A stretch of DNA of 64,000 nt, taken from the NCBI GenBank assembly GCA_000708835.1, contig DF237366.1, positions 1 to 64,000 on the forward strand, given 5' to 3'. The position numbers and the translations under genes were made by a program. Under the pieces are notes generated by a model that saw nothing but the letters and a program-made list of their open reading frames with translations, was not told where the DNA came from and made no database searches. The DNA is from Klebsormidium nitens (Eukaryota > Plantae > Klebsormidiophyceae). Position 1 is the first letter of the stretch. Every line of letters starts with the position of its first letter. Below, one piece after another: positions 1,587-51,400 of the stretch.

Positions 1587-4500
1587 ATGGGAGCACTGGA
1601 CGGTTTGTCTCTTACCCACGAGCATGGCAAGAGCCGTGTGCGAGTGTGCCGGGTGTGGCGGGAGGGGAATATGCACTACATGGCTGAGTGGAGTGTTAAC
1701 GTGTCCCTGGTCTCGGACGTCGAGGATGCCTTCACCAAGGGCGATAATCGTGGCATCGTAGCGACTGACACCTGCAAGAACACGGTGCGGACAAGAATCT
1801 TTTCAAGCATAAAGTTGCCAGAGATTTGAGTGGTTGCGAAGTTGGTGTTTGACGCTGTGCTCATTCTGGTTTGCCACTTGACGTGTAATTGGGTCTGCAC
1901 CAATCAGCACATGGAATGTTCCGTGACTGGCTAAGGTCCTTTTCAGAAAACGCCAGGCGATCATCTGATCTGATCGTGGTGATCAAGTACCCTTTTGTGT
2001 AACCTGCTTTGATCTGGTTTGGTAGACATTCCACAGCCCACTTTCCCCAGTATTCCATCTCTATTATCTGAATCATGGTTTTGAACTGCACCGCTGGTTT
2101 CTGGCACCATAATCCATGGAATTGCATCACCTGCTGACATGCCTGCTTAGCAAGCTCCAAGCAAAGGGCTGGCCAGTACTTGAAATACAAGATTGCTGAA
2201 TGCAGTTAACAGATGCAGGGGTGTGCTTCTTAAAAGCCAGTTCATAATGGGGGATTTTTTACCACCCATGATTCACTGTTTCTGTTGGCAGACGTCAACT
2301 GATTGCATGAACATCAATCCTGAAACCCCTATCCGAAAGTTTCATATGTTTGAAAGTCCTCACATTTATCAGTCAAAACACAATTGCACAGAGAAGGTGC
2401 ATGTCACAAAAGATCCTTTTGATAGAAGCTGGGCCCCCCCTTGCAGGTCTACGTGGTGGCAAAACAGTGCAAGGAGCGCTGCTCAGCGGAGGAGTACGCA
2501 ATTAAGCTTGCCCAGCACTTCTTGAAGAATTACAGCCATGTGAGGCACTTCAGACGCGACTAAGGGCTGCTGCGTATTTTGGATTGCGATGCCCAAGTGA
2601 TGTCTTGGCCGCGATCTGTCAATTCATCCGGACAGGTCCCCTGGAGTCGAAACTCTGACCGGCTTCTTTGATCCTGGGAGGTGGGGAGGATGTCGTTGTT
2701 CTGTTCCAGCTTGGCATTCAATGTATCAAAGGAATTTTGAAGCTTTTCAAAGATGTAAGACCCTTACGAGCTACTTTTGGGTGCAGGTGTCAGAGGTGAC
2801 TGTAGCCATCACAGAGAAGCCCTGGGTCAGAGCAACTGTCGAGGGCCAGCCACACAAACATGGTAAGTAGTGGTGGTCGCATCGTATAGGGCAGCCTTAT
2901 GAATCCAAGTTGGGCAAGTTGGTGTTGCAAAGTGACACCTGGCACTGGTGTCCAAAATTGTACAGGGCGTCCCCACTGTTCTGCAACTTATCCTTAAATT
3001 CATTGATGTTCATTCGCTTGTCTCGGATTCTCTGGGGTGGCTTCATACATTCTCGATTTGATTGACTGGCCCCATCTGACTGCCACATCTCTTCTGCAGG
3101 TTACCAGCTGGCAGTGGCGAAGCACACTGTGGAGGTCAGCTTGCCGCGGAGTGGCCCCCTGAAGCTGGTCTCAGGCGTTGCCGACCTCACTGTAGCCAAG
3201 ACTACGCAGGTGGGCGCCCATGCTGTTGCTAGTTGCCACTACTCGCCCACTTCATTTCAGATGTCTGCTTCTCCTCTTCCTTCACAGCCAGGTGCGCAGT
3301 TTTGATTGGACAGCGGCTCGCTTTTGCCTCTACTTTGTGACTATCTCACACCGGCCTACTTGAAAGTGTTGCTACGTTCTGGGGGCTTCTGCCACCCGTG
3401 GGCAGTTTTTTTGGGTTAAATATATGTCCTCCGTCTTTCTGTCTGTTCGTCCTCGTTCACGACCCAGTCATTGCCTTGGCCACTTGCCTGGTTTTACTGT
3501 CTTGATCAAGTGCACCTTGGATCTGACAGCTCTGCTCATTTCGTACCTCGCGCTTCGATCTCTGATTGATCTTCCCATGTTTTCCCAATTTCTATCCCAG
3601 CACGCTAGCCTCGGTCACAGACTCTATGTTGTGTGCCGCCCTGACCTTCTTTTCTGCTTGAAATTCGGGAAGAGAAATTCCCGAACTCTTCTTTTTCCCT
3701 GTAACCCTCTTCGAACTCTCCTGACCCCCTTGTTTCTTCTGCAGTCTGGCTTCTCCGACTTTTACCAGGATCAGTACACCACCCTGGGCTCGGTGTCGGA
3801 GCGCATGCTGGCCACGTCCATTCGCTCCACGTGGACCTACTCGCGCCTCCCCTCGGATATGACTGCGACGTTCGAGGGCATCAAGACTACGCTGGCCGAG
3901 ACGCTGTACGGGCCGCCAGACAAGGGCGTGTTTAGCCCCTCCGTCCAGGCCACGCTCTTCCACATGGCCAAGGCCGTCCTCGCCAAGTGAGCAGCCGGCA
4001 GGCACAGCCTTCATGCTTCAACTCGGAAACTTGAATGGTCCGGGAGTCGGGAAGTTTTCAAGGAGACCAAACTCATGGACTGTGTGCTTTCCGGATAGTC
4101 GGGTGACTTGCATTGTTGAGGGTTTGCCCGTGCAGTTGGTGAAGGCGACCAGACCCCGGTCGATCAGCCAAGACACGCTTGACCGGCACACGCATGCCAA
4201 GGAGGACGAGGTTGATCTGGCGTGGCCGTTGATCGCCCTAGATCAGCAACCAGACGGAACTTGAAAGCTGTCAGGAGCTCCGGTAGGTACCGGGAGTGGT
4301 GCGGTGGTGCTGACGTGCTCGTGATGCAGGTACCCGGAGGTGGCGTTGGTGCACCTGAACATGCCCAACATCCACTTCCTGCCGGTCAAGCTGCCGTTTG
4401 TCAAGGTGCGGCGCGTCTTCAACGGACAAGGGCACTCAGGACACGTTGTAGTATCCTGGTTGTCTGCATTCGAGACACATCAGGCATGCTCATGTTGAAC

Positions 4501-12483: not shown

Positions 12484-15400
12484 TCACAGGGCATGTCCTT
12501 GCTGAACAGACATCTCTTCGTCACGCCGCTCATCAGCGTCCAGAAGCGCAAGTCCGTTTGCCTCGACCTTTGCCAGCACACTGTCTTTTGGCTCAACCTC
12601 TGCTGGAACGAGAGCGTCCACTGTGACCTCCGAGGTATTCGCCTCAACCTCCAGTTGTGCCCTTTCCGAAGCACTCTCTCCACCTTGCGGCTCTTCGTTC
12701 GGGTCTGCACTCATCTCCGACCTCGCTGGCGGCTCCTTACTAGGCTCATCACCGTTAGCTGTCGAATCAGCGCCCAGCTTTGCCGCCTTGTCATCTGTCG
12801 TTCCAGTCCCTGCCATTTCGGCAGGCGTGCTACTTGTGATGGTCCCTCCTGTCTGCTGCTTCTCGTCGGCTGCAGCCTCCCTCGTCACCTTCGGGTGCAA
12901 CACCTTGCTCGGTGTCACTTTCGCGCCTGGACTCAACCTGCTTTTTGCGGCGCTTGCAGACACAGGCCTGGCCACTCCCCGAGGACTCAACGTGCTGGCA
13001 GTCCTGGGGCTGGCCACCCGCCGAGAAGTTGGGGTGCCGGGCGTCCCGGGGCTGGTCACCCCCGCCTTACTCGCAGACAGGGGCCGGGATCCTTGCCTCG
13101 TGACTACTCCAGCTTGGGAACTTGCGCCCGAGGGGCTGGCCATTGCTGCCGCAGGGGAGGACGGCTTTCCAGCCGCTCCCGAGGTGTCGCTGCTCCGGCG
13201 GGTGGAGACCTTTGCAACAGCAGTGCCAGCAGGACGGGGAGAGGCCGGAGTGCTTCCACCCTGGCCTGGGGCCTTCTTTGACATGGGGGAGGGGGTCTTG
13301 CCAACTCTGGGTGACCCGGTTCTGAGGGGTGCTGGCTTGGTCAGCCTCGGGGTCACAGCTTTGGCGGGGGTGGGTGACGGCTTGGGTGACGGGGTCGCGG
13401 GCTTGCTCAGCCTGGGAGAAGGCGTTTTGACGGAGCTTGGAGACGCAGGTTTGACGGGGCGAGGAGACGCGGCCTTGGCAAGGCCTGCGGAGGAGGGTCT
13501 GGGAGGGCCTGGCGAGGCGGTTCTGTTGACCCGAGGGGAGGGCGGCTTGCCGGTCAGTGGGGAGGCGGGCTTGCTGGCGGGGCGGGAAGATGGCTGGGAG
13601 GTCCCGGAAGCCGCACCAGGGGTTGCACTGGGCCCCTTGTCGGAAGTGGCCGTGGTGCTGCCATCCTCCGAGCCAGTTGAGTGGCGCCGCTTAGGACCAA
13701 GGACAGGCGCACGCGGCGTCGTTCTTGGGCTCTGCAAGAGAGGGGTAAATCATAAGACCCTAATACGCGAAAAGGCGGACAGTCTAAGAACCACGAACAA
13801 ATTTGGAATGACCTTCACAGGCAGCCACAGTACAACGACGTTAGTTTCGACGCTTAAAACAAGGACAGCGCTCACCATTGACCACCTTCGATTAAATGGG
13901 TTCTTCTTTGGCAAAAGAAGCGGCGGCACCAGCGACACTCAAGATGATATTGAGACAGTAAATCTTTGGCCCTCACGGGAGTGCATTGCTGCAGTAAGTA
14001 GGGAGGGACGGTACGCGAAAGCAGAACGCACCTGTCCCAGTGTCGGCTTGAAGACCTTGGCATCTGGTGTGAGTTTAGCAGGTGTCGCTTTGAAAGAGGC
14101 GCTGCGCCTCACTTGCTTCTCCTCCTTGTCCACCTCTTTCTGCAAACGGGGTACACCATGTAGGTTTCAAGCGCAATCTGACCGGACGAAGAGCGGAGCA
14201 TGCGAGGGACTTCACAAAAGTCTGGTCGAGCGCAGTGCTTGGTATTGGTCCAATCGGGCCTCGAAGTAAGCTAGCGAAGGAAATCCAAGGACGATCTCAG
14301 AGTTGATTGCTTGCCGCGGCAGAGCCTCGCCTGATCGGTGATCTGCTGACGCCTTCTCCTCAAAAAACAGGAGCTTGTACCCAGAGAATGGCATACCTTC
14401 AATTCCTGCAACATCTTCTCCCGTTCGCCCTCCAACTGCCGCTCCCGATCCTCGACCTGCTTCTTAAACTGCAGAAGTGGAATAATGAACTTCAGTAAAT
14501 CTGAAGGACAGTTCAGTATATCCCCCGACAATCGTCGTCAAGTGGCCGCATACCTCCTTCCCTTTGCGGCAAAACGTGCGAACCATACAAACTTCCCAAA
14601 CTTTGATCACAAAGAACAAGACCATGCTGAGTCCGTCGGGCTTGAAACATATTTTTATAAACAAGGAGACCTCGAAGAAGGAAAGAGAAACACCGTTGCA
14701 TGCCGAACGGAGGGCGCTATCCGTAGAAGCCCAGCAGAGACATTATCGGACCTTAGCCGCTCCGGACCTTGCAGTGCAAGTCCTGAATACAATCAGCGAA
14801 CCTACCTTGTCTCGCCTCTCAGCTCGATCTTCTACGGAGAGCTTGAAAGCTGACGGCTTTGTTGGAGGGGGCACAACACGCGGAGAGGGCGCTACATCCG
14901 GCCTGGGCAGTCAAAAGAGGATCAGTGTCTTGTGCAAACGCTTTGAATCCAGCAGACTCCGAAGGTGCGGCGATGATTGCTGCAGTCACCAGGCAGAACG
15001 GTCTACAAGCTGAGTGGGAGGAACGTACGCACTTGAGGATTGGCCGTGCTTTGAAGCTCCTGGGAGCAGTCTCCTCAGCTTCCTTCGCAGCTATATCTGC
15101 CTTCAACTGCTCCAAAGCTCTTTCGTGACGCCTGCAAGACCCGGAAATTGTCCACTTGGCGTGCTTCAATCATAATGCACGCGAAGGCCAGCTGCTAAAG
15201 ACTTGCAACGCACAGAGTTGCTTGTGGTACTACCGAACCTTCAAAACGGTGTTCTCGCGTCACAAGAGTACAGTTCGCGATTCCAGACGGGTGCTTGCTT
15301 ACTTGAGGCCTTCGAGGTTGAAAGGCTGTGGCGTTGTCTGTGCTTTTCGACCTGTTGAAGACACAACCTGCAGCGAAGGGAATGGTTTGTTAGTGAAGCT

Positions 15401-19222: not shown

Positions 19223-21927
19223 TCATGACTCGCTTGTTGTCGAATCTTCCTCTGGAGGGTCATAAGGCAGCTCGTGCCGGGGTGCATCATATTTCTCCCG
19301 AAGCTGCTTTGTAGGAATGAAATCTCCGTTCGCGTCTTGCCCATAGAAAAGAAGGTACAGGTAAGGATGAGGGAATGGCTCCTGCATCAACAGAATCTAA
19401 GTCAGCCTTCGAAGAAAGTATGCCTCCCCCTCTGATTCTCACAGATTGAAGATCAGTTCTTCTCCGATAATAAGCTCTTCTTGAGCGCGCACGAAGCCAG
19501 CTAGAGTGCACGAACTTCATCTGCGGCTTCACCAAAAGCGTGCTGCCCTGACAATCCGCTCTCACCACTACCGGGCTTCTATCTTCCATCTTCCATTTCT
19601 CCAAGAACCGAAGAACGCAAAACTGGCTAGCTGATTGTCTCACCTCATCCTCTTCCTCCGGAACTTCGACATTTTCCTCGGCGACATAGGCCACCAGCGT
19701 GCTTGGGCTCTGCTGCATGTCCACCAGCACCTGGTAAAAGGGCTGCTGGCGTCCCCGCGGCAAGTTGTCCACCCCGTTCTTCTCCATCCACTCTGACGAC
19801 TCAAAGCACTGCCAGTCCATCCCACAGATTACCCCTCGGTACCCCAACTGTGCATGCCGTATTTTCTGCCCCAACCGAAAGTTAAACTTGACCTCTGTGC
19901 TCGTCAATGTCTGGGCGGTAGCGGCAAGAGCATCCAACTGCACGGACGGAGGTGCAAAAATCAGCTCCTGGCAGTAGCCCCCCTGAAACACTAAAAGCTG
20001 GTCAAAAGAGAAGATACCTTCCTGGACGATGCCAATACCCTTTCAGCAAGCAATCCCCTGTCTAGTCTGGGAGAAGCGAAATTCCTTGTCTCACGGCACA
20101 TCGGACTCAAAAGCCTCTCTACCATTCCTTCGACAGATAGACAAGAGCGTCGACATGCTGAAGGATTCCTCACCTCGATTTTTGACAGCTGTTTCCGAAT
20201 TGCAGCCGCCTGCTCATAATTCTCCTCCTCTACGGCCCTCTGAAGTTCTGAGCGCAACCTCAGCGCTGCAACCGTGGTGTCGGTCACTTCCTCCCGAGGA
20301 CCAGTGCCGGCCCGCTTGGCGCGCCGCTGCTTCTCCAGCTCCTTCTCAATCCCCACAATCTTCTCCCGCAGCTCGCCAGCAGCCTCATACTGCTCCTGAT
20401 TCATTGCCCGCTGCAGACAAAGCACCACCACCAGGATTGAGGGACCGCTGTAGCTACAACGAATGCCTAGAAGGTAGGCTGGCCCACCGCAGAAGGAAGT
20501 ACACAATGAAATGCCAATTGCTACACAGTTGCTCAAGTAGGAAGCCAGCTGACTGTTGATTTCAACCAACGAATCGTTCAACGATTCACAGCACCACTGA
20601 GTATCCGGAAGACCTTGGTCAGACTTGTACCCTTGGCAATGAAAGTCGGTCCTGATGGGCAGTCTTCATTGCAATTTGAACAAGTTCAACATTCTTCAAA
20701 AGTGTGGCTACTCTCAGACATGGTGACGGCAACGCAGTAACGGAAGTGCCTCGCCCCAAAGAAAGGCTTCCCTTTAAGATGCCCAGTGACCAAATTTGTG
20801 CAAAAAGCCACACCATACCCAAAAAAACTGTCGGCATTGTACCCAGAAATGAGCCATTAAGGCATGCAACAGCGCCATTGAAGCACGCAGTGAGCAATGC
20901 CTAAGAATTGAATGTTTGAAAGCGGGCACTGCCACAACGACACAACATCAGCAACTGACATGATTGATTGCTTTGCAGAGAGACACAAGCTTTCAGTAGA
21001 GAATGCTGACGGAATCACAAGCATCTATGCTGTCTCCTCAGCAACAATGAAACCTCTGTTATATTGTCTGTAAGAACAACGTGTCTGGCACAATGGAATT
21101 GCCGGGAGGGACGAACTAGCCGAAAGGGACGAGCAGAAGAATGTTTCCAGCTTACCTGTGCAAAATCACCAGCATCAACAAAACCCTTAGAATTTCCCAT
21201 AGTGATAATTGTGGATGATCATTGACAACAATTGAAGTAAGCTACCTGCCGTCTGGAAGCACAAATCCCCTGCTTATAAGACTAGTGCAAAACTCTGACT
21301 GGCCTAGCAACCCACCTGCAACCTTGTACCCAGGTCCAGCTGGAAGAAGAACAGCAGGAGCTCCTCATTGACCATCTGGCTCTTCTCCTTCGTGGTGAGC
21401 CCATCCCTGGTGGCCCTCCCTTCAGACTCCCCTTCAGATGACTGCGCTCTTGCGCATGTTCTTGCAGGCGGTTTACTCCTATGCACCCCTGAAATGGTCC
21501 GCTGGTGGTTCTGTCCATTGAGGGACTTGTGAGAACCAGAGGCGAAAACAGATGAACGACTTTCCAGAGAAAAGGTGCCCCTCACTTTTAAACATGGGTG
21601 GACAGGGCTTGTAATTGGGGATGCTGAAGGGGAAGAGCTTGGTGAACAACCCCTTGGATCGTAGCTGGCAGCACTTGACAGTTCAGGAACTGTGAAAAAG
21701 GTGAGTGCAGCGCCGGCATTCAGCCTGCCTATTTTTCTGCGGGGTGTGCGGGGAGACGCTTGGATGCCCAATACCGAAGAGCTGCTCGGTGCTTCTGGTA
21801 GACGAAGTTTTGGAAGTTTAAGAGCCACGTGGCTGTACTCAGTGTTGCCGAGTGAGAAGGCTGGCGATGACACCATTCCTCTACTTCCCGCTACTGCCCT
21901 TCCATTGTGGGCAGCCGGGTTATGCAT
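19223..21927 (-). CDS. CLPF: Plastid Clp protease adaptor ClpF (UVR motifs plus YccV/HspQ-like domain), 4 exons
   Basis: Exons 21927 (or 21876)-21316, 20410-20174, 19937-19644 and 19381-19223. Ser-rich transit-peptide-like N-terminus, NEELLLFFFQLDLGTRLQRAMNQEQYEAA, LQRAVEEENYEQAA (UVR), FRLGQKIRH..GYRGVICGMD, QPFYQVLVD, YVAEEN and FPHPYLYLLFYGQD..GDFIP. Confidence 0.92.
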
Positions 21928-35900: not shown

Positions 35901-38900
35901 TCATCACGACGCACGACAAGCTGGCGCACTACCTGCGGCTGATGACGCACCAGCTGCCCATCGAGAGCCAGTTCATCGCGTCGCTGCGGGACAATCTGAA
36001 CGCGGAGGTGGTTCTCGGCACCGTGACCAACATCAAGGAGGCCATCACCTGGCTCTCCTATACCTACCTCTCCGTGCGAATGCGCATGTGAGCCCCGACC
36101 CGCCCCCACTCGGCTCTTTGCTCCTGTTCAAGGTCTCCTGACCCAAGTCTTTGTGACAGTTTGCTCTGGTCAGGCTCAATTCTTGCTTGGGAAGGTTGAC
36201 TTTGCCGAAAGCCTGCCCAGCACGAATGCGGTTGCTAACACGGAAGCTTATCTTGTGCTGTCTTGGGTCTCCACGGCAGGGTTTTCAGCCGGCATAAAAG
36301 GCCGATGACCAAAACTTTGTATTTGGAGGAGTCTTTGACGGGACGGGTTTGTGAAGCGGCGCTTCTTGGATTATACTACTTGAGTATGTTGGGCGTCCAC
36401 TTCGAGGGTTTTTACCCCACTCACGTGGCTGACGAGCGGTCGCTTGGTGTGTGCGCGCAGCAACCCGCTGCAGTACGGCCTGACGTGGGAGCAGGTGGCG
36501 GTGGACCCGTACTTGGCGAGCCACAAGAAGGAGCTGCTGACCAACGCGGCGCGCGACCTGAACGCGGCGCAGATGCTGCGCTTCGACGAGCGCACGGGCA
36601 ACCTGTACGTGTCGGAGCTGGGCCGCGTGGCCAGCCACTTCTACCTGCAGTACACCAGCGTGCAGACCTACAACGAGCTGCTCAAGAAACACATGAGCGA
36701 CTCCGAGGTGCGCCGCACGCCAGCACGACATGCGAGCTTGCGAAACCTGGCCTTTAGCATAATCTGTCCGCTTGTCCGTTCGTGCTCTGCGGCATTAGTA
36801 GAATTTAGTCAGATGCTAACATACGAAGAGATACGTCTATTGGTGACAGCCACAGTCCGCATGGCTTAGTATCGAGCTCTCTGCGGGGAGTTATGGGTTT
36901 TTAAACCGACTTGATAGAGCTAACTTCAGTTTTGGCTGGTGAGTTGCAAGTGTTCTCCTTTGGGGCCTTGTGCCGCCGCTGCTGACGCGCACGGGTGTGG
37001 GTTGTAGCTGGTGTACATGGTGGCGCGCTCTTCCGAGTTTTCGAGCATCGTGGTGCGCGAGGAGGAGCAGCCCGAGCTGGAGACGCTCATGCGCAAGCAG
37101 TGCCCGCTGCACGTGCGCGGCGGCGCCGAGGACAAGCACGGCAAGATCAACATCCTCATCCAGGCAAGCGGCGCGGCCCCCCCCTCTGTGCGCGAGGCGG
37201 CCCCTTGCTGTAAAGAAACGCAGCTCGCGGCTTATTGCACTGTGAACCGCCAACGACAGTCACTTGTGTGCGTCTCTACAATTTGTATGCCTATTCGTAG
37301 ACGTTGAGAACAAAGGGCTATTACTGGCGACCTCTGCCCTTCCGCGGGTGTTTGCTTTCAGCAGTTTCCTAACGGCTGGTTGTTTGTGGTGGCAGGCCTT
37401 CATTGGGCGCGCGCGGCTGGAGAGCTTCTCGCTGGTGGCGGACAGCGCGTACATCAGCCAGAGCATCGGGCGCATCACACGCGCGCTGTTCGAGATCTGC
37501 CTCAAGAAGAGCTGGTGCACCCTGGCATACCTCCTGCTGCAGTACGCCAAGGTCAGCGCCGCGCGCCGTGCACCGCCCACGATTCTTTTGTCTATTTGGA
37601 GAACTTTGCGCAGGGCACATCAGGGGTCATCTGGAGTGGCTATCCTGGAGCTGGCAGGGAGTCATTGTGAGGTCCCGCAAGTATTGCCTACGGGGTTTAC
37701 TCGCTTTTTGATCTGCTGTAAGCTTCAGAGGTAGTAAGATCCGGAGTTCTCGGTATACGCAGGCGGTGGAGCGGCGGCTGTGGCCGCACCAGCACCCGAT
37801 GCGGCAGTTCGAGACAGTGCTGTCGCCGGAGGTGATGAGCAAGCTGGAGGAGCGCGCGCCCGACTTCGAGCAGCTCTACTTCGAGATGGACCAAAAGGAG
37901 GTCGCCGAGCGGATCCGCAACCCGCACGGGGCCAAGGCAAGCAACTTCCGACGCTTCTCGCTGCTTCCATATGCACCGTTTTGCTTCTGAGCAATCTTTG
38001 ACGGTGGGGAACCACTCACCGATATTGACGCCTGAGCGATGTGGCGTTCGTATGCTAACCTCGTAAAGTCGTCGGTTCCGCTGGCAGCGGCCTGAGCGGG
38101 TTTGTCTTTCCTGGTGCGCAGCTGGTGATGCAGGCGCTGCGCAACTTCCCGCACTTGGAGCTGGACGCGAGCGTGAGCCCCATCACGCGCAACGTGCTGC
38201 GGGTCACGCTGCGCCTCTCCCCGCACTTCGAGTGGAAGGACCGCCTGCACGGCACCGTTGAGCGGTGGTGGATCTGGGTCGAGGTCAGCGCGCAGCCGCC
38301 ACTCAACCTGCAGCAGTCTGAAGAGCGCCAGTAGCTGATCGTTCTGGCCTCTAATGCTGCTTTTTCCATCTTGTTTATCGTCCTATTTTTTGTCCCCAGC
38401 CCAATTTTCTTTTTACTGTTTCCGCTGACCTTTGCGCACCAACTCGCTGTTGGCTCTCCCGCTTCACTGCAGCCCGGCTTAGGCTTTCCTCTTCCGGATG
38501 TGCAGGACTCGGAGAACGAGCACTTGTACCACACGGAGTACTTTTTGCTGACCAAGAAGATGATGGCGGAGACGACGCACGCGATCAGCTTCACGATCCC
38601 CATCTTCGAGCCGCTCCCCCCGCAGTACTACATCCGCGTCATCTCCGACACGTGGCTCGGCGCGGAGACGGTGCACGAGGTGTCGTTCAAGGGGCTCATC
38701 CTGCCGGACCAGCACCCCCCTCACACCGACCTCCTCGACTTGCGGCCCCTGCCGCTCGCCGCGCTGCGCAACGCGCAGTACGAGGCGCTGTACCGGTTTA
38801 CCCACTTCAACCCCATCCAGACGCAGGCGTTCCACACGCTGTACCATAGCGACGCGAACGTGCTCCTGGGTGCGCCCACCGGCAGTGGCAAGACCATCTC

Positions 38901-41900
38901 CGCGGAGCTGGCCATGCTGCGCCTCTTCGCCGCGCACCCCGGCAGCAAGGTGATCTACATCGCGCCGCTCAAGGCGCTGGTGCGCGAGCGCATCGACGAC
39001 TGGCGGCGCAACCTGGTCCCCGCGCTGCGCAAGAGCATGGTCGAGCTCACCGGCGACTTCACGCCCGACATGCGCGCGCTGCTGGCCGCCGACATCATCA
39101 TCTGCACGCCCGAGAAGTGGGACGGCATCAGCCGCAACTGGCAAAACCGCAGGTGGGGGACTGTTCCTGTTGAGAACGTTCCTCGGCTGCTGACTGTGCG
39201 GGATCTTGATTGACACAGCCTGAATGGAAGTTCCTAAAGCAGGGCAGTACTTCCCCAGGTTAAGCTGGTGCGAAATTCTGGATCACGGGTCTTTGGTTGG
39301 GCTGTGCAAGAGCTTGCCGACTGCCCAAAGCGAAAAGGGGTATGCTGACGCCTTCGCACGCTTCTGCAGCTACGTCCAGAAGGTGGGCCTGATCGTGATC
39401 GACGAGATCCACTTGCTGGGCGCGGACCGCGGGCCCATCCTGGAGGTGATCGTGTCGCGCATGCGGTACGTGAGCAGCCAGACGGGCGCGCCCATCCGGT
39501 TCGTGGGCCTCTCCACCGCGCTCGCCAACGCGCGCGACCTCGCGGACTGGCTCGGCATCGAGGAGCGCGGGCTGTTCAACTTCAAGCCCAGCGTGCGGCC
39601 CGTCCCGCTCGACGTTCACGTCCAGGTACGGCCACGCGCATGAGGCAACGTACACGGCCACGCCCGACGCCTGCGCGCGAGTTCACATAGTCGCCTTTTC
39701 GGGTCAGAAAGTTGCATTTATTTTGTGGCGTTTGAATTATGATATGAGTGGCTCGGCGTCTCTCCAGGAGCTGCTGTCAAAGTTTGACAGGGGACTCACT
39801 GGTCCGCGGCGGCTGCTCCTCGCAGGGGTACCCCGGCAAGTTTTATTGCCCGCGCATGATGAGCATGAACAAGCCGACGTACGCGGCCATCAACCAGTAC
39901 TCGCCCTCCAAGCCCGTGCTCGTCTTCGTCTCGTCGCGCCGCCAGACCAGGCTCACTGCGCTGGACCTTATTCAGGTGAACAACTTCGGTGCACGAATTC
40001 CCATGCAACTCAGGCGCAGGGCCCTTGCTGAACGAGAAGTAACATCCGGCAGGAGTTTCTTGTCACGTTGTGTCTTAGGTGCGCTTGCTGGTACTTGTTA
40101 CAGCGGCAGTCAGCAAAATGAGACGTGCGCAGGCCTGCTTTGAACACTAATTTTTGCAGCCGGTTTTCTTCGTTTTTGTTCTGCCAAGAAGTAACATCGC
40201 CGACATGACGTCACGACCAGTCAAGGCCGTTCAAGGAATTCAAGCAGCGGTGTGATGTCCGTGTGTGCAGTTTGCTGCTGGCGACGAGCGGCCGCGGCAG
40301 TTCGTGAACATGGCGCAGGAGGAGGTGGAGGCGGTGGTGGAGCAGGTCAAGGACGGCAGCCTGAAGCACACGCTGCAGTTCGGCATCGGGATGCACCACG
40401 CCGGCCTCAACGAGCGGGACCGAACGCTCGTCGAGGAACTGTTCGTCAACAACAAAATCCAGGTGCCCCTCACAACAACAGCTCCCGCAATTGGATCCGG
40501 GAAGCGTATCTAAGTTCTCATCTTTCTACGTCTTTGCGAAGGAGAGGTTATCCAGCATCTTGAGGTTTACGAGTTGGCAAACGCACACCAATTTACTGGA
40601 GGGGTGAAAGCAGCCGGGGTCATATTGCGCTGCGTCCTTGCGTGAGATGCGCGGCATGCCATCCGCAGATCCTGGTGTGCACGAGCACGCTGGCGTGGGG
40701 CGTCAACTTCCCGGCGCACCTGGTGGTGGTGAAGGGCACGGAGTACTACGACGGCAAGAGCAAGCGGTACGTGGACTTCCCCATCACGGACGTCCTCCAG
40801 ATGATGGGCCGCGCGGGGCGGCCGCAGTTCGACGACCACGGCGTGGCCGTCATCATGGTGCACGAGCCCAAAAAGAGCTTCATCAAAAAAGTGAGCGGCC
40901 GCGGCCGGATGTGAAGAGCACGGAATCTGTCTCTCTTTCGGGCTGGAGAAGAACCTCGGCCGTTGGTCCAGCCACTAGGTCCCTTTTGGAACCGCATCGT
41001 CTGCTTCTGCTGGTTGTTGCATCACCAGAAACCAGCTGCACCTTGAGCGCATCGTAGGGGCCGCTGTGGCGGGCTGTGCTTAGGTCAATCTGCACAATGT
41101 GCAGTTCATGTACGACCCGTTCCCGGTGGAGAGCAGCCTGCCGGACGTGCTGCCGGACCACGTGAACGCGGAGGTGGTGGCGGGCACCATCGGCAGCACG
41201 CAGGACGCCGTCGACTACCTCACCTGGACCTTCTTCTACCGCCGCCTCGTGAGCGCTCGGCCTCGCATCTGGCCATGTTCGTATAGTGCAAACATTCCAT
41301 GCTCTAAACTTTGTGCTCCTGATTCTCCTGGGGCGCGGAAATAAGTGTCCTGTTAGACCCTTCTTCCTGAGGACCTTTATCGAGATCTCTGAATCCCGCT
41401 GGTGACTTGGCGGCTGAATTTTGGAGCAGGTACCTGGACAATCAGCCGTTGATCTGACCGTTGGCACTGCGCTTGGCCAGGTGATGAACCCGAGCTACTA
41501 CGGCCTGGCCGAGACGAGCGCGGACGCCATCAACGCGTTCCTGTCGGGCCTGGTGGGCACGACGCTGGGCGTGCTGGCCGACGCGGGGTGCGTGCGGGTG
41601 GAGGCCGACGGCAGCGTGGAGCCGCTCATGGCGGGCCGCATCGCGTCCTTCTACTACCTGCACTACGCCACCATGACGCTCTTCAGCGCAGCCATCCGCG
41701 CGGACACCCTGCACCAGGTCAGCGCGGGGCGCGGCCAGCAGCCAGCGCAAGCTGTGCGCACTTCTGGCTCGCCGCTGGCTCTGCGCATGAGTATTCACGT
41801 GGACAGCCGTGCTTGGCCGCCAGATATCTGTTTTTCGTCACTTCATGTCACATTCGAGGTGGCGATCATTGTTGCATTTCTCAGCGATACCACTTCGTTG

Positions 41901-44120
41901 ACCGGCTTACGTTCTGGTGACCGGATAGAGACCGCACCGTGCGTTCCGGCCGCTGACTGTGCCTGCCGTTTTGCTGTTTGCAGGAGGTGCTGCGCATTTT
42001 GTGCGGTGCGTCCGAGTACGACGAGCTGCCGGTGCGGCACAACGAGGACAAACTGAATGCGGAGCTGGCGGGCGTGGTGCGCTGGCCCGTGGACGCGCGC
42101 GCCCTGGATGACCCGCACATCAAGGCCAACCTGCTGCTGCAGGTGACACCCGCGGGGCCTGTCGCACAGCATGACCATGCCCCTCGCTGCTGGCCCGCTG
42201 GGGATTGGAGATGCCGGGTCGGGACGGGGGGCCCTATGACCATTCGTCTGTTTTGCAATCGAGCACCGAGTCGGTCTGGCCTTTGGCGGTTTGCGAGGCT
42301 CTCTCGGTTCCTTCCTAGGTGTCCGCTCGAGTCTCATCAGTGGAGCGTCGTGCGTTGCTGCGCAGGCGCACTTTTCGCGGCTGGCGCTGCCGGTGTCGGA
42401 CTACATCACGGACACCAAGTCGGTGCTGGACCAGAGCATCCGCATCCTGCAGGCCATGGTCGACATCGCCGCGCACGGCGGCTGGCTCGCCACCACGCTC
42501 CACGTCATGCACACCCTGCAAATGGTGCTCCAGGTCAGGCGCCGCACCGCATGCAGGCCGGCGTGCTCCGGCGGGGGTAGCCGCAAAGTCCTGTCCTTCT
42601 CAGAAAACGATTCGAGGGGGAATAAGCCGGGGGCCATCGTTTAGCCTGCGCTCTTTGATGTCCAGAGTCGTAGGCTGAGCACCACGTAGTGTCCCGCTCT
42701 CCGCCAACAAGCCGTTGCCTCGTAAGGGACCAGTATTTCGCTCTTGGCCCCTTCTATCTTAAAGCGCCGCTTGAAGAGACAAAAGAAGTTACTTGTTACT
42801 TTTTGTTTCCTGACCCAGTCGCTCCCCGTTGCAGGGCGCTTGGCACGACGAGTCCGCGCTGCTTTTCCTGCCCCACGTGACTGCTGACGTCGTCCAGCTG
42901 CTGGCTGCGCGCGGCATCCGCGGCCTGCCCCAGCTCATGGCGCTCTCCGCGGACCGGATCCGCGACTGGCTGCGCGCCCTGCTCACCCCGCCCGAGATCA
43001 GCGACCTCCTGCAGGTAGGCGCCCGCAGCAGTGCCGCCGTTTGTTTGCCAGACCGGGACAAAAGTATCCCGCGTGGCTATGGCCCTGCTACACGTGACTC
43101 AGCTTTTGATGATCTGGAAGTCCCCAACCCCAAATTCAGAACATTGGACGGCGGCGCCAAGAGCACCCGTTGCTTCGTTGGTCACCCCGGCTGCTACGAC
43201 GTGTCCCTAAGAGCTCCGCTCCCGTGAGCTTTGCCTTTCGCACGCCCGCCCACCACGGCTTGCAACGCACCTGCTTGTTTCCCCACCCCCTCTCACGCCG
43301 TCCCTCGTCGCTGCGTCCTCAGGCTTTGGCGCGCCTCCCTCGGGTCAGCGTCCAGTGCGCCCTGAAGCCAGCCTCGGGCGACAGCCAGCAGGTGGAGGTG
43401 CACCTGACGCGGCGGCGGGTCGGCCCTGGGCGGCCCGGGTCGGCCAAGGGGTGCCGCGCATACGCGCCCCGCTTCCCCAAGGTCAAGGAGGAGGGCTGGT
43501 GGCTTGTGGTGGGCACACCCCACACGCACGAGCTGCACGCGCTGAAGCGGGTCACGCTCGCCGACAGGCTCACCACGCGACTCACCATCCCCCGCCTTCC
43601 CTCCGACTCACACCAGGTGCGCGAATCGAGGCTAATGCAGGGTGGCACTATCGTCGTGTCTGCTTGCGGTGCAGGCAACGGCAGGTGATAGTTTCAAATC
43701 GTGGTCCGGTTGCTGTGCTTGTCACTTCCGGCTCCTAGTCGAGACGCTTCCTAGTGATGGGCCTGGCTGCCCTGGTTCCCTGGCGGCCCTGTGACGACTT
43801 TGCCCGTGTCGAATGCGCAGGAGCTGCGGCTGCACCTGGTGTCGGACTGCTACCTGGGCCTCGACCAGGAGCACGGCCTGCACCAGCCAGCAGACGCCGC
43901 GGAAGGGCCCTCCACGTCTGCGCAAGGCGCCGCCAGGAGCCGCAACGGGCAAGTCAGTGCCACAGGGCCAGCCACAAGTACCAACGGCGATGGGGAAAGC
44001 AGAAGACATGACAGTAAGGGGTCTGCCACAGGCTGGGCGATGCCCCACGTTGATGGCCGGGGGAAGGATGAGGAGGATGACGACGCTGAGGAAACCTTCT
44101 TTGATGCTTCCGAGGACTGA
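29920..44120 (+). CDS. ASCC3: ASCC3/Slh1-type (plant DExH14) Ski2-like helicase with two helicase-Sec63 cassettes, about 29 exons
   Basis: Start exon 29920-29955 is spliced to VPRLTTMLR (30309). Cassette 1: [60 protein letters not shown]. Cassette 2: [50 protein letters not shown]. Sec63 segments and [10 protein letters not shown]. The TLNRIQS and FNPIQTQ motifs favour ASCC3 over Brr2. Confidence 0.93.
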
Positions 44121-45639
44121 GGTGGCGGGGGGACTGAAGGTGCCTGTTTTCAGTGCAGCTGACCCAAGAAAGGGTATGCTGCAACCACCATCGCAACCTA
44201 ACTCCGGTTGGAGAAGGTCAAATAACCAGTTGACGCGCCAAAGGACTCCCTCCTTCGGGAATGATCTTTCAAAAGCATCGGTCATTTAAAAAAATCCTCT
44301 GTATTTACTCTCGCCTCGAGTGATTGAGCATGAGTGAATTTCAATGAACATGAATGCACGAGATGTTCGCGTCCAGGTTCTTCTGCATTGGCCTGAGCAT
44401 GTACATTTGGGCTCCTCAAAATAGAGCCAATAGTGCGTCTGTTGCATTTTGACGCGTATGATGCAGTCTGACACACGAGACCAATGTGCATATAGGATTC
44501 TAAGCGGGTTAACATACGCCGAGGCACTTCGATCATACTTACACATGTCTAATGTCTGAACGCGGTGAAAACAAAGTATGATCTCACTTCGCTGAGCTCT
44601 TGAGTAGGTAGTTGCTTTCACTGTGTTGGTGAGCACGTCCTGGCGGCCAACACGTGGCCACCACATGCACTTGTTTTGCAATGGCAGCCGCCGGATCATG
44701 CATATGGCTGCCTATTGCGCAATTTTCTTTTATGGTCATTGAAGATTTCTTGAGCATGCCCTCAAATCTAGTATGTTGCACACTGACTTTTGGATGGTTC
44801 TAACTCCTAACTAAATGCATAGCGGCCGCTGCAAGGCCAATTTTGCGCAAAAGCTGCAGCACTTATATATTCGAGCCGCAATAATAGGATCAATGCACAT
44901 GATTGCTAGTCGGATCTGCGCTAAGGCTCCTCGTGCCAGCCGTGTGCCAGCCATTGTATATACGTCGCGATCTTTGATTACATGAAGCTCCAAAAGACGA
45001 CGGACTCAATGTTTGCCGCCAGAATGCTGGATAGGCCGCGTCTGGCAACATCAAGTCGACCGAGGGTACGTGTTCTTTTTCAAACATCGAATCAGCTAGC
45101 AACTTCAATATGCGTTTGTTTGTGGGCACGCGGGCTTGTGAAAACGTGAACATGAAGGATCGTTTGCACCAAGCTCCGAATACCAGGACTCAAGAGCCCC
45201 ACTGAGTGCCCCGTACGCGCACGTACCTGCGACATGTGCAGCGATCGGCTGCGGCAGTTGGGCAGGCCAGCACTGCAGTCACTGCGGCCGGCCTTGCGCG
45301 GCCGGCTCTCATTTTCGCCAGAACTTCTGGGCCAATCAGCGAGCTCTATTTGCCTTCTCAAGTTGGACATCTGAAACGTCGATTCCAGTCGATTGTGTTT
45401 GCTTTAGACGGTCAGGATAAGGTCTGCACGCGCGGGCCGATCACCATGCGAATTCAAATACAAATTTTGCGTTGTCGAACCGTCGAATTCCTTCTAGGCT
45501 GAATTCCATCTAAATCTGATACACGGCCTCCGACGCCGGAACTTGAGGTTGGAGTGGGTTGGACTGCTGGGATCTGCAGTCTGGACTCTGCAAGGAACTC
45601 TGCTGCAGAGTCCAGATAGTACCGGTAGCTCGGACTGCC

Positions 45640-45646
45640 TATAAAT
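45640..45646 (+). promoter_or_regulatory. Candidate TATA box of the H3 gene
   Basis: TATAAAT about 100 nt upstream of the H3 ATG, followed by a pyrimidine-rich leader. Positional inference only. Confidence 0.5.
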
Positions 45647-45695: not shown

Positions 45696-46759
<1,064 letters not shown>

Positions 46760-46791
46760 GCGCAAAGCACTCTCACTTGACCAACCAAACT

Positions 46792-46807
46792 GGTGTTTTC
46801 TAACACC
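46792..46807 (+). terminator. Histone mRNA 3'-end stem-loop (6-bp stem, 4-nt loop)
   Basis: CCAAACT-GGTGTT-TTCT-AACACC-ACCC, starting 33 nt after the H3 stop codon. The geometry and flanks match the replication-dependent histone stem-loop. Confidence 0.8.
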
Positions 46808-48424
46808 ACCCTTCTCTTGGAATCTTTCAACACTGTGAGTCCAAATGGGATTGCCGAAGAACAGTCTGTTACGTGTACTTGGGGGTTTTAGGTCGAGGAG
46901 GCAGTCCTTAAATCAAACTTTGGTAGGAGGCAGCTCCGCGGCTCTCATGTGCTCTTGAGTATGGAATTCTACCAGGAGGCAATGTCCTGTGGTCACCAAT
47001 GCAATGCTTTTGTGGGGCTCCTTCTGAGAAAGAAGTCTCTTTTAGCAATCTGTGTACCAAGACCAGGATATCTTTCCTCAGAGTAGGCCAGTGAACCAAA
47101 ACTGAGGACCTGCAGGTCAAGAGTTGGTGTTCTGCATCTTAATCAGCTGGTTGTACCATTTCGCTGAGCCTTTGATACTGAGCCACACAAAACAGTGTCA
47201 CCGCATGTGCAAAACACGCTTAACTCACTGCACAAACGACTTATCCCTGCAGATGAAGCTAGTGCTGTCAAACTCTTCAGTGACTTCCTTACCAGCGCCC
47301 TTAACCTACATCCGAAACTCCTCAAAATAGAACTGTAGAAACTTCCTACATGACGTCTGCCAAGTGCAAGTCCCTCTTGACATTACCTGGGACGCACCAG
47401 CAATGACATGACTTCTCAGTTCTTTAACGTTCCAGCTTTGTACGGTGCCTACAAGGTGATCTTATCTGATCTGATTATCTTACCAACTGCAGGAAAATTC
47501 TTCATACTTTCATCAATATTTGGCAAGAACTCTCCCCCCTTGTCCATGTGGCCCGGAAGGGGGGTGTCGAACTGGTAGCCTCACACTGTCACAGTCACCA
47601 CCGAACTGTGCCTGTCACCCTCCGTTTGCGCAGGAGTGCTGATTGGTCATGAAGCGAGAGACGCGTGCAAGGAGATTTTGCTGGATTGGATTCCTTAGAC
47701 CTGCATCATCCAGTCTGCAAACAGGACGACCTGATGGAAAAATGAGAGATACGCAATTCTGAGAATGGCTTAGAGCTCAGATGTTGGTGAAACGATTAAA
47801 CCAACCCCAAAGGCTATAATGGATGCAGGTATTGGGACATTGAAGGGCCAGCTGCCGAATCACTTTCATGTGTACAGAGCCTGCGCACATGTCTTTATCT
47901 GGTGCATTCTCCTCGATCCAGCGCATGGGGCGCATGAGGAATATAAACAGTGCACACTGCTAAGTATAGCGCCTGCGTAGAGCTCATAGTAGTGTATCCT
48001 GGTATAGGTATACCTAATGCGCTTTAGTCACAGCTCACACAACGTGCACCCATTGGCCAGTACGCAACGACTGTTTCCTATCACATGCCGTGCAGGCCAT
48101 GGCCCATCAGAGCATATCGCATGGCTCTGTATTCATGGGGCGGCCGAGCCTTGATGATCCATGATGTGCAGCTTGCAGTTGGCGCGTGGTCGTACTTAAA
48201 TAGTAATACCTGTATGTTGTTGTGCATCATGCTCGTGTTGAACATCATGTTCGCTTATAGCATGCCATATGGCAGCCGCCGACGTTATAAGCAATTGTGA
48301 ACACTGTGTTGATTGCATGGCCCGAGGACTACGTTCTCGAACAGGTGATAATTGGGCTTACATGATCATAACTAATGCCAACGACTCACATCATGTAAAA
48401 GGTGCAAACTCAAATACCGACCTC

Positions 48425-51400
48425 TTACAGTCCAATCACTGCATCGAGCTTTCGTTGCAGTTCAGCGATACTTTGTAGCTGAATGACTCCTTTGTCTTCA
48501 TCATCATATTCTTGCTCAATGAGTGAAGCAATCTGCCCATGTGCCTCCAAGATGTTTGATCTGCAAAGGGCGATCACGTATTTATGTCAGCTACTCATAT
48601 GATGCAGATAGGTACTCTTGAAACAAGCGGAGAAGCATCCTGCCAGACAAGCTCCAACCTCTTGCAGGGGTTTACCGATGCAGATCGTCGAACACTAGCC
48701 ACGATCGACAGCTGCCAGGTCTTGGGGACTCACTTGATGGGCTTGAAGAGGATGGCCCGCGTGCTCACGTTCTGCAGGTACACCTTCATCTTGGCCACCA
48801 CGGGAGGCAGCTCCGCCCGAATGGCCTCGTCCATCTGCAGCCATCCGCAGGGAACGAGCTCAGAAAAGCGACACGGCAGGTGGTATCAGCGCGGCAGTCC
48901 CTGTCTTATGATGTCCAGTGACCGCTTTCAAGAACGCACCCTCGGATGCGAGACAGACGCCAGCGCAGCCCCGGCCTTCCCGCCCGCTCCTCACCTTGTC
49001 CATGATCTCGTGCACCTTGGCGGCCTGCGCAAAGGCCTGCGTGCGTAGCGGCACCGGGTCTCCCCCACTGGCGCTGACGGTCTTGACGGCGGTGACCTTG
49101 GTGATGAAGGAGAGCAGCGGCTCGATCATGAGCTTGGTGACCGCCATGATGAACTGCTCGCACGTCAGCTTCAGGTCCTTCTCCAGCTCCTGCACCGCAC
49201 GCACACGCAGGGCCGTCACTCGCAGGCTCCGTCGCTTGACCACATGAAGCCAAACAACAAGAGCCAAAGACAAGGAGCTTGGCCAGTTAGAGGGCTCTGG
49301 ATCCTCAGTGAGCGTTGAAAGCTTCGCACCATGCTGTCGACATGCTGCTTGGTATACTGGTTGATCAACAAAGGGGCTCACAAAGGTCAGCAGACAGCTC
49401 ATGGAAGGTCGGAGATCACCTTTTTAGCATCAATCTGGTTCTCCACGACCCGAGGCGCCCCGCTGCTGAGCACTCGGACGAGGCCGTTGCTGCTGGAGAA
49501 CGCGAAGATGGAGGCCTGGCCCCGCAAGATGCGCCGCATGTGCTCCTGCATGCGCCGAGTAATGGCTAATGGTCCCGCACAGTAAAGAAACGAAGTATTC
49601 CCAACACACGGACTGAGCGATGCAGGCCAGATGTGACCACCTCACGACATTGGAAAGCGTTCAGACTGATGCAGGCCGAGGAGTGAACGGTGAAAGAAGA
49701 GCGAGGTCAATCCGGTGTGCCTGCGATAAAAGAGGCTGGACTTACGAGCATGTGCGAGAAATCGAGCTCCTTGTATGTGACCGCAAAGTCGATGTCGAAG
49801 GGGGCGATCTGAAAGAGGAAGCAACGACGAGATGCGTCAGCAAAAGGGCCCTTGCTCGGCCACAGGATGCTGGAACAGGCCGACAGCAGGGGCATGAAAA
49901 GCAGCAGAGAGCGCACAATGCGTTTTGCACAGCGGCAAAGGACACGTTCCAGTGGCGGGTTGCGGCGCCGGACCTGCTCGCGCAGGATGAGCAGGTGCTT
50001 GACCACGAAGAGCTGGCCGTCCAGGCTGCCCGCTTTCTTGGCGATGCTCTTGCTGGCCCGCTGGATGGACATTGAACACAGGCTGATCGCCTCCTGCAGC
50101 AGGCAAGGGGGCCAGTCAGGTGTGTAGGAGGCAGCCTGTTCGTCTCTCCTGCAGAAGGGGCAGGCGATGGGGAACGATTTGTTCACAAGAGTCCAAAATT
50201 TGGAGGCCGGCCCGGCAGCGCATGGCGGCCGTGGAGGGCGGGTCACCTGGGCGAGGCCGGTGAAGATGTTGTGGTCGACACAGCGGTACAGCTTGGAGAG
50301 GCACGACAGCGTGCGCTCCAGGGGGGGGTACCACGTCGTGTACGCGTCCTGGCCGTCCTCGCCCGCCGCGCCCTCCTCCTGGATCTGCACGCACCGTGCA
50401 CACGACGGCTCAGCTGAAAAGGGGTTATGCCGCGCCGCACCATAGGCACATCAGCACAGCGGAGCATAGCCGAGCGTTTACGGAAGCCCCAGATACAGAC
50501 CCCAAGCGATGCGAAGAGGGGAGAACATGAAGCAACAGTCGCCTTCTTACCCGGAAGGACGGAAAGAAGCCGGCGAAGCTGGCCTCCGCTCACGAAAAGC
50601 GAGAGCCGAGAAAGGAACATAAGTCGTGACAAGGGGCGGTAAACCGAATTAGGTACTACACGTGGAGCAATGCAAGACGGCAGCTAGGGCGTTAAGCCAG
50701 ACGGCGAGGTCGAAGCGAGCGCCCCTTACTTCCGATTGCGTGGAGGGCACTTTCTCGAGCTTGGCGGGATAGTCCAGGTCGTCGGGGGTCGGATTGTAGT
50801 TGGCAATCTGCAGCCCAGAAGGAGGCAATCAGCATTGAACTTGCTGCCTAAACTGCCGTTCTTGTAGCCTCGTACCGCATCAAAGAGCATGTCTACAGGC
50901 AGCGCTGGAGAATCGACCGACATGCATGTATCAGACAAGAGTAGGCAATCATCGGGGGGAAAGCTAGGGTCACGGGTTTGGGGTGTGCGCACCTCGTCGC
51001 GCATGTAGGTCTGTGCGCGGAAGGTGAGGCGCTCCTGCACGTCGGCGAGCGTGCGGTCCACGGTGGGCCGCAACCCGGCCACGGCCTCGCCCTTGCGGCC
51101 CAGCTGCTCGTCCAGCACCTCCGCCTTCAGAATGTCCACCTGCACCACCGCCACACCGCGTCAGGGCAACTGCGAGCAGCGGCAACTAGCCGAAGCAAGG
51201 GGCAGGCACAAGGAACGGATCACTTCGTAATCTGAGAAACGACTGTCGTGTGTTGGTGATTTCAAGAACCGCTTCGCCCCAGGGTCCCGAAGGTAGAAAC
51301 GTGATGTCGTCCTCGGAACCTGTGCTAGCGAGCGAGCCGCGTTTGACGATACTGCAAGACTTCTGACGTCCTCTTTGAGCGGCACACCGACCGAGAGGGA

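Follow-up and report, generated by a model that had tools for sequence, protein, structure and literature searches.

Conserved histone-type stem-loop and downstream box behind an intron-containing H3 gene of Klebsormidium nitens

In the current analysis we have identified a histone-type stem-loop behind a histone H3 gene with three introns in a stretch of 64,000 nucleotides from Klebsormidium nitens (contig DF237366.1, positions 1 to 64,000), which is referred to as the window. The region 46780-46830 is probably a working 3'-end processing signal of the H3 mRNA, which would be bound by SLBP, cut near the ACC and left without a tail. In the proposed signal, an A/C-rich flank is followed by a 6-bp stem that starts with GG and encloses a loop of 4 nt, then by an ACC tail and finally by a short downstream box (Table 1). 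The invariance of 31 nt amid diverged loci, together with the match to a covariance model, argues for a real element that is under selection and linked to histone genes.

The H3 gene starts with an ATG at 45747 and is interrupted by three introns, all of the GT..AG type and of phases 1, 2 and 0, which are located at Gly33 (phase 1), at Arg72 (phase 2) and after Lys115. The encoded protein is characterised by Ala31, Tyr41, Asn87, Leu90, Ala110 and Phe120. The gene stands alone, outside any histone cluster, and is flanked by ASCC3 and by COG3; the latter is convergent to H3 and has its last exon at 48427. The putative promoter box is not conserved with the related locus L123 at the level of blastn. 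The window also contains a ClpF-like ORF whose best named matches are from land plants and Mesotaenium, which points to a streptophyte.

Table 1. Positions of the H3 gene, the stem-loop and the associated elements in the window
Feature	Positions	Strand	Remarks
Putative promoter, TATAAAT-like box	45639..45646	+	Some 100 nt ahead of the ATG; read directly from the sequence
H3 exon 1	45747..45846	+	Met, residues 1-32 and first base of Gly33; 100% identical to L123 and L125
H3 intron 1	45847..46102	+	GT..AG, phase 1; only in the gene of the window
H3 exon 2	46103..46220	+	Gly33 to first two bases of Arg72
H3 exon 3	46417..46546	+	Arg72 to Lys115; has Asn87, Leu90 and Ala110
H3 exon 4	46697..46759	+	Arg116 to Ala135, has Phe120; TAA stop at 46757-46759
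Conserved A/C-rich 5' flank, ACCAACCAAACT	46780..46791	+	Invariant in window H3, L123 H3, L125 H3 and L125 H4
Stem-loop	46792..46807	+	5' arm GGTGTT 46792-46797, loop TTCT 46798-46801, 3' arm AACACC 46802-46807
3' flank	46808..46811	+	ACC invariant, fourth base variable (here ACCC)
Downstream box, GGAATCTTTCAA	46819..46830	+	Candidate histone downstream element; 11 nt past the stem

The 27-mer made up of CCAAACT, GGTGTT, TTCT, AACACC and ACCC occupies exactly positions 46785-46811. The stem begins 32 nt past the H3 stop codon (the 33rd base after TAA) on the sense strand. RNAfold predicts the hairpin, to which a seventh pair (U-A) may be added at the base of the stem, and assigns -6.0 kcal/mol to the 16-nt core. 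Perfect hairpins with a 6-bp stem and a 4-nt loop number 38 on both strands of the 64 kb window; GG opens four of them, of which only the one behind H3 is followed by ACC. The window has a single exact copy of the core. A text search of the literature for the letters of the hairpin returned unrelated papers only.

Among the features of the RF00032 type, the element has a 6-bp stem with G-C pairs at positions 1 and 2, a 4-nt loop, a location less than about 100 nt after a histone stop, an A/C-rich 5' flank and a 3' flank of the ACC(C/A) form. It departs in the loop, where U is called for at positions 1 and 3 and UUCU offers U at the first and C at the third. The Rfam scan gave no Histone3 match at the gathering score in the whole window, nor at E<=10 in the 201 nt of 46700-46900; the animal-trained model is blind to the stem found here. 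The same scan gave no U7 match in the window, where none is to be expected. An extended helix around the hairpin, in which CUCACUUGACCAA pairs with UUGG..UCAA..GUGAG (z = -1.8), was considered and dropped because it is absent from the folds of the related loci L123 and L125, the hairpin alone being common to them.

Relatives of the gene have been identified without using the hairpin, the query being a stop-free stretch around exon 3 (peptide homology). It retrieved the gene fragments P0041 and P0042, on contigs from the JGI metagenomes 3300060284 and 3300060285, both of which share the unusual Asn87 and Ala110 and have exon 3 with identical borders. In one related locus (L123/L124) H3 stands alone and COG3 lies convergent to it downstream; as this is the arrangement of the window, the locus is regarded as the ortholog. 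In another (L125) H3 and H4 form a head-to-head pair, the H4 containing one intron. The H3 exon peptides of L123 and L125 are 100% identical to those of the window, while the H3 coding DNA is 87-92% identical across the loci and the third codon positions only 67-76%. A synteny search by way of an ASCC3 exon gave L121 (exon 69% identical), with no H3 downstream, and L122 (92%), which is too short.

Behind each H3 lies the block ACCAACCAACCAAACT-GGTGTT-TTCT-AACACC-ACC, and the H4 of L125 is followed by the same block with the loop TCCT. Thirty-one consecutive columns (46780-46810 of the window) are invariant in the four genes except at loop position 2 (46799), where the L125 H4 has C. The UTR on either side of the block is unalignable across the related loci, and the distance from stop to stem is 45 nt for the L123 H3, 51 nt for the L125 H3 and 42 nt for the L125 H4. 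The alignment of the paralogous L123 and L125 H3 genes ends exactly after ACC, and the hairpin is the sole structure common to the four sequences. A covariance model (R1) built from the three related hairpins, with the window left out, identifies 46774-46833 of the window at 62.2 bits (E 2.2e-13), the next match having an E of 0.69. These comparisons indicate strong purifying selection on the element behind H3 and H4 in this lineage.

The hairpin has also been followed beyond the lineage. Public metagenome contigs were scanned for the stem, a loop with its third base free and the ACC tail, that is GGTGTTTTNTAACACCACC, and at least 120 loci were found. Fifty-seven of the 127 matches listed are located 16-116 nt (median 43) after the stop of an H4, H3, H2A or H2B gene, and one further match listed lies behind a linker histone. 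In many environmental eukaryotes, members of the family to which the hairpin of the window belongs are found behind each of the four core histone genes. Among the matches listed, the free base of the loop is nearly always U, with C observed once behind a histone gene (H4, L021).

A palindrome arisen by chance, a transcription terminator or a fragment of a repeat, with no link to histone mRNA, would account for the silence of the Rfam Histone3 model and for the observation that about half of the exact matches listed are not behind core histone ORFs. Such an origin is scarcely credible and may be considered effectively refuted by the sequence comparison, given the 31-nt block that stays invariant behind H3 and H4 despite diverged synonymous sites and UTRs, the covariance E of 2e-13 and the 57 of 127 matches listed that are found just past histone stops.

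The preliminary description had recognised a histone stem-loop behind H3, and geometry, conservation and the covariance model all agree with it; the name 'replication-type' that it gave to the stem-loop is a putative one. Its further suggestions that the lineage keeps the hairpin and applies it to a spliced gene are borne out by the relatives, since similar hairpins follow the H3 of L123 and the H3 and H4 of L125, and these genes are intron-bearing like that of the window with its three introns. It had also noted the missing U at loop position 3, which is C in the window and in the three related genes.

An H3.3-type variant had been considered on account of Tyr41 and Leu90, of the introns and of the solitary location of the gene. 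This possibility was ruled out, as the protein is that of the paired H3 of L125, all four exon peptides being 100% identical. The H3 of the window therefore appears to be the ordinary H3 of the lineage and no separate replacement protein of the H3.3 type. The gene has introns and stands alone, which are traits of replacement genes, yet the relative has introns in both genes of its H3-H4 pair. The solo H3, the paired H3 and the paired H4 of the relatives all combine introns with the hairpin, introns being the rule here. Intron 1 is peculiar to the window, exons 1 and 2 being contiguous in the H3 genes of L123 and L125. Animal stem-loop histone genes are intronless, a feature of the animal-type replication-dependent gene that the three GT..AG introns of the window gene do not share.

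A short box, GGAATC-TTCAA, follows the hairpin, and the ortholog L123 has GGAATCATTCAA in the equivalent place. In the blastn comparison with L123 the conservation extends from exon 4 over the hairpin to 46830, and nothing is conserved from there to the last COG3 exon at 48427. Of the distinct environmental histone hairpin loci among the matches listed, 51 in all, 16 have a GGAA that starts 10-15 nt past the stem; equal-sized control windows further downstream of the same 51 loci have 0-2. The paired H3 and H4 of L125 lack the box and have other sequences there. The position of the box resembles that of the animal histone downstream element, and it may recruit a U7-like factor. The preliminary description had reported no purine-rich downstream element and had on that ground considered 3'-end formation possibly independent of U7; the box at 46819-46830, conserved in the ortholog and with its GGAA enriched at this offset, contradicts the former and removes the basis of the latter. 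Its statement that AATAAA and TGTAA are lacking nearby holds: no AATAAA, ATTAAA or TGTAA is found for about 1 kb downstream, the first such motif being an ATTAAA at 47795.

The proposed order of events is that the three introns would be spliced first, and the SLBP of the alga would then bind the stem-loop. By analogy with animals, the pre-mRNA would be cut a few bases past the stem, near ACC, so that about 46808-46811 is the predicted mature 3' end. The downstream box possibly helps the cleavage, and the message would end there with no poly(A) tail. A tail-less hairpin end would place the solo H3 under common regulation with the hairpin-bearing H3-H4, H2A and H2B genes, presumably with coupling to S phase. 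The observations that count against a 3'-end signal are the missing Rfam match, the loop C, the three introns, the solo locus and the absence of the box from L125.

Some of these observations would suit another role of an SLBP-binding element, in which the gene mostly makes a longer polyadenylated mRNA and the hairpin inside it tunes translation or stability instead of forming the 3' end. The mammalian H2AFX gene has two isoforms, both containing the stem-loop, either as the 3' end or inside a longer polyadenylated mRNA (PMC4604434), and dual-form genes occur in moss, fern and cycad. The location of the H3 between ASCC3 and COG3, away from any histone cluster, fits such a role, as do its three introns, considering that introns and stem-loop processing are mutually exclusive in animals. 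In the relative, both genes of the H3-H4 pair combine introns with the same hairpin, and therefore introns do not single out the gene of the window. The lack of AATAAA, ATTAAA and TGTAA within about 1 kb and the lack of conserved sequence in the ortholog between 46830 and the COG3 exon at 48427 favour a 3'-end signal over read-through. An internal, regulatory hairpin is thus considered unlikely, though it is the alternative to be taken most seriously.

The third loop base bears on how the hairpin, as a 3'-end signal, would be recognised. All four genes of the lineage (window H3, L123 H3, L125 H3 and L125 H4) have C at this position. Human SLBP has a tyrosine on which the bases at loop positions 1 and 3 stack; a change of U to C at position 3 'greatly impaired binding' (PMC4604434). 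As this C is fixed in the lineage and harmful to binding by the human protein, the SLBP of the alga is expected to read the loop differently from human SLBP.

A more radical departure would be a non-canonical reader, either a factor adapted to the C at position 3 or 3'-end formation that dispenses with a U7-like guide. The constancy of this C in the four genes and its effect on human SLBP are compatible with it, and so are the differences in the downstream box among the solo H3, the paired H3 and the paired H4 and the absence of U7 from the Rfam results, though U7 is not expected within the window. The strongest cues for SLBP are however kept, namely GG at the base of the stem, U as first loop base, the A/C-rich 5' flank and ACC. 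Behind histone hairpins a GGAA box is over-represented at a fixed offset, and the ortholog keeps it; LSM10/LSM11 homologues are reported from green algae and land plants (bioRxiv 10.64898/2026.10.14.759114). A reader of this kind is therefore very improbable.

A tentative suggestion, for which we hold no great confidence, is that the stem-loop system of the Klebsormidium lineage has been re-tuned, with C fixed at loop position 3, multiply spliced pre-mRNAs as substrates and GGAAUC-UUCAA pairing with a U7-like RNA of the plant line. If this were true, the SLBP of the alga must read the loop differently, and splicing and the hairpin would be combined in a way not tolerated in animal cells. If the box is the pairing site of a U7-like RNA, the 5' end of that RNA would be predictable as the complement of the box and could be searched for.

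Compared with the animal system (RF00032 with SLBP and U7), the element shares the 6-bp stem opening with two G-C pairs, the 4-nt loop that starts with U, the 5' flank of the CCAAA type, the ACC(C) 3' flank, the location about 30 nt past the stop and an element about 11 nt after the stem. It differs in positions 3-6 of the stem (GGUGUU against the animal GGCUCU), in C instead of U at loop position 3, in the possible additional basal U-A pair, in the introns of the host genes, in the lack of an Rfam match and in the box, which is GGAAUC-UUCAA against the AAAGAG type of animals. The environmental hairpins with GGTGTT, TTTT, AACACC and ACC, found behind H3, H4, H2A and H2B, differ from that of the window only at loop position 3.

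The chlorophyte elements resemble the present one in being stem-loops of the green lineage, often at divergent gene pairs and with non-polyadenylated mRNAs, and Volvox H3 genes have one intron together with the palindrome; those of the Klebsormidium lineage are distinguished by C at loop position 3, the longer invariant flank ACCAACCAAACT and up to three introns. Palindromes at the 3' ends of Volvox and Chlamydomonas histone genes are reportedly the subject of Mueller & Schmitt 1988 and Fabry et al. 1995.

Histone mRNAs with stem-loops and no poly(A) tail have been identified by nanopore sequencing of total RNA in green algae, the moss Physcomitrium, a fern and a cycad, all of which also have SLBP, and SLBP is described as lost independently in Selaginella and in angiosperms (PMC13130582, Genome Biol 2026). 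The same pathway, with stem-loop and SLBP as proposed for the moss, fern and cycad, would survive here in the streptophyte line. These data make outdated the statement of the preliminary description that land-plant histone mRNAs are polyadenylated and lack the hairpin. Its proposal that the pathway was lost after this lineage split from land plants stands in direction (kept, and lost later); the premise on land plants has fallen, and a sharper version is already published. Intron-containing H3 genes were excluded from that survey and Klebsormidium was not included (PMC13130582), and genes like the H3 of the window were therefore not examined there.

A preprint maps stem-loops and SLBP across eukaryotes and gives Klebsormidium nitens stem-loops after H2A, H2B and H4 'but not H3', the canonical U of the loop being absent (bioRxiv 10.64898/2026.10.14.759114). 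The hairpin of the window agrees with these in the missing uridine and differs in that it follows an H3, as do those of the solo and the paired H3 of the relatives. A gap is filled in this respect, the 2026 survey having no stem-loop after the H3 of Klebsormidium nitens. With H2AFX of mammals the gene shares the stem-loop and a place outside the main histone clusters; unlike H2AFX, no poly(A) signal is found downstream of its hairpin (about 1 kb).

Survival of the pathway in the streptophyte line, the broader claim, has been published before, and the present finding mainly confirms and slightly extends known biology. What the sequences appear to add is that H3 too bears the stem-loop in this lineage, that ordinary H3 and H4 genes combine it with introns, that diverged loci share an invariant 31-nt block in which the loop C is fixed, and that the ortholog retains the GGAATC-TTCAA box.

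As ordinary H3 is here encoded by intron-bearing stem-loop genes, two rules drawn from animals and flowering plants would fail in this lineage: that introns are the mark of an H3.3 replacement gene with a poly(A) tail, and that stem-loop genes are intronless. This is of relevance to surveys that discard intron-containing H3 genes, such as PMC13130582. The fixed loop C and the conserved box may together provide two handles on the evolution of SLBP recognition, and of a possible U7-like guide, in the plant lineage.

A group of histone-type hairpins having the same stem as that of the window H3 gene, and differing from it only at the third loop position (UUUU for UUCU), has been identified in the metagenome scan, and among the matches listed at least about 30 exact copies are located downstream of long non-histone ORFs. 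The distance from the stop codon to the hairpin in these cases is 13–60 nt. The preceding ORFs include a RING finger protein and a Ulp1/C48 peptidase, and many are without a Pfam match. A soil contig of 6.2 kb encodes three UUUU-loop hairpins, each 3' of a different ORF. The UUUU-loop hairpin may serve as a general 3'-end signal in some eukaryote or giant virus.

Features of the window and of environmental contigs carrying UUUU-loop hairpins
Feature	Sequence	Position	Strand	Remarks
UUUU-loop hairpin	L034	576-594	+	
UUUU-loop hairpin	L034	3411-3429	+	
UUUU-loop hairpin	L034	2148-2166	-	
UUUU-loop hairpin after non-histone ORF	L016, L030, L001, L004, L041, L102, L118			
Uricase exon	window	3424-3990	+	
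ClpF-like ORF	window	19287-19988	-	YccV-like domain; best named relatives: land plants, Mesotaenium
ASCC3	window	38371-44120	+	Sec63/DEAD domains; end near 44120
H3 intron 1	window	45847-46102		phase 1, inside Gly33 codon
COG3	window	48427-50367	-	convergent to H3

The window H3 gene is flanked by ASCC3 on one side and by a convergent COG3 on the other; the ClpF-like ORF and the uricase exon elsewhere in the window are ordinary genes, which served solely for the taxonomic placement of the organism. The COG3 exons share a DNA identity of 81–91% with those of L123, the locus of a related taxon bearing the orthologous solo H3 gene. The H3 signal is separated from the last COG3 exon by 1.6 kb; this stretch is equal in length in the two taxa and is not conserved between them.

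A contig of the same metagenome, L121, bears an ASCC3 ortholog, and over 1.2 kb its region 13310-14516 is 81% identical to sequence lying 5' of the solo H3 gene in the related taxon (L124, 447-1657). No H3 gene has been found on L121: the contig comes from a second related taxon, or else the H3 locus differs in structure.

Introns 2 and 3 of the window H3 are common to the H3 genes of L123 and of L125, a related head-to-head H3-H4 pair, and intron 1 is missing in both. This difference represents a gain or loss of the intron over a short evolutionary distance.

The H3 of this lineage is unusual in some of its residues. The window H3 encodes Phe120 (exon 46697-46759), a position usually occupied by Met, and Asn87 and Ala110 are likewise present in the lineage's H3. 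Met is also the usual residue at position 84 of H4, and the H4 of L125 (1789-2040, minus strand) contains Phe at this position, within the segment TAFDVVYALK. The H3-H4 core has undergone two parallel Met-to-Phe changes.
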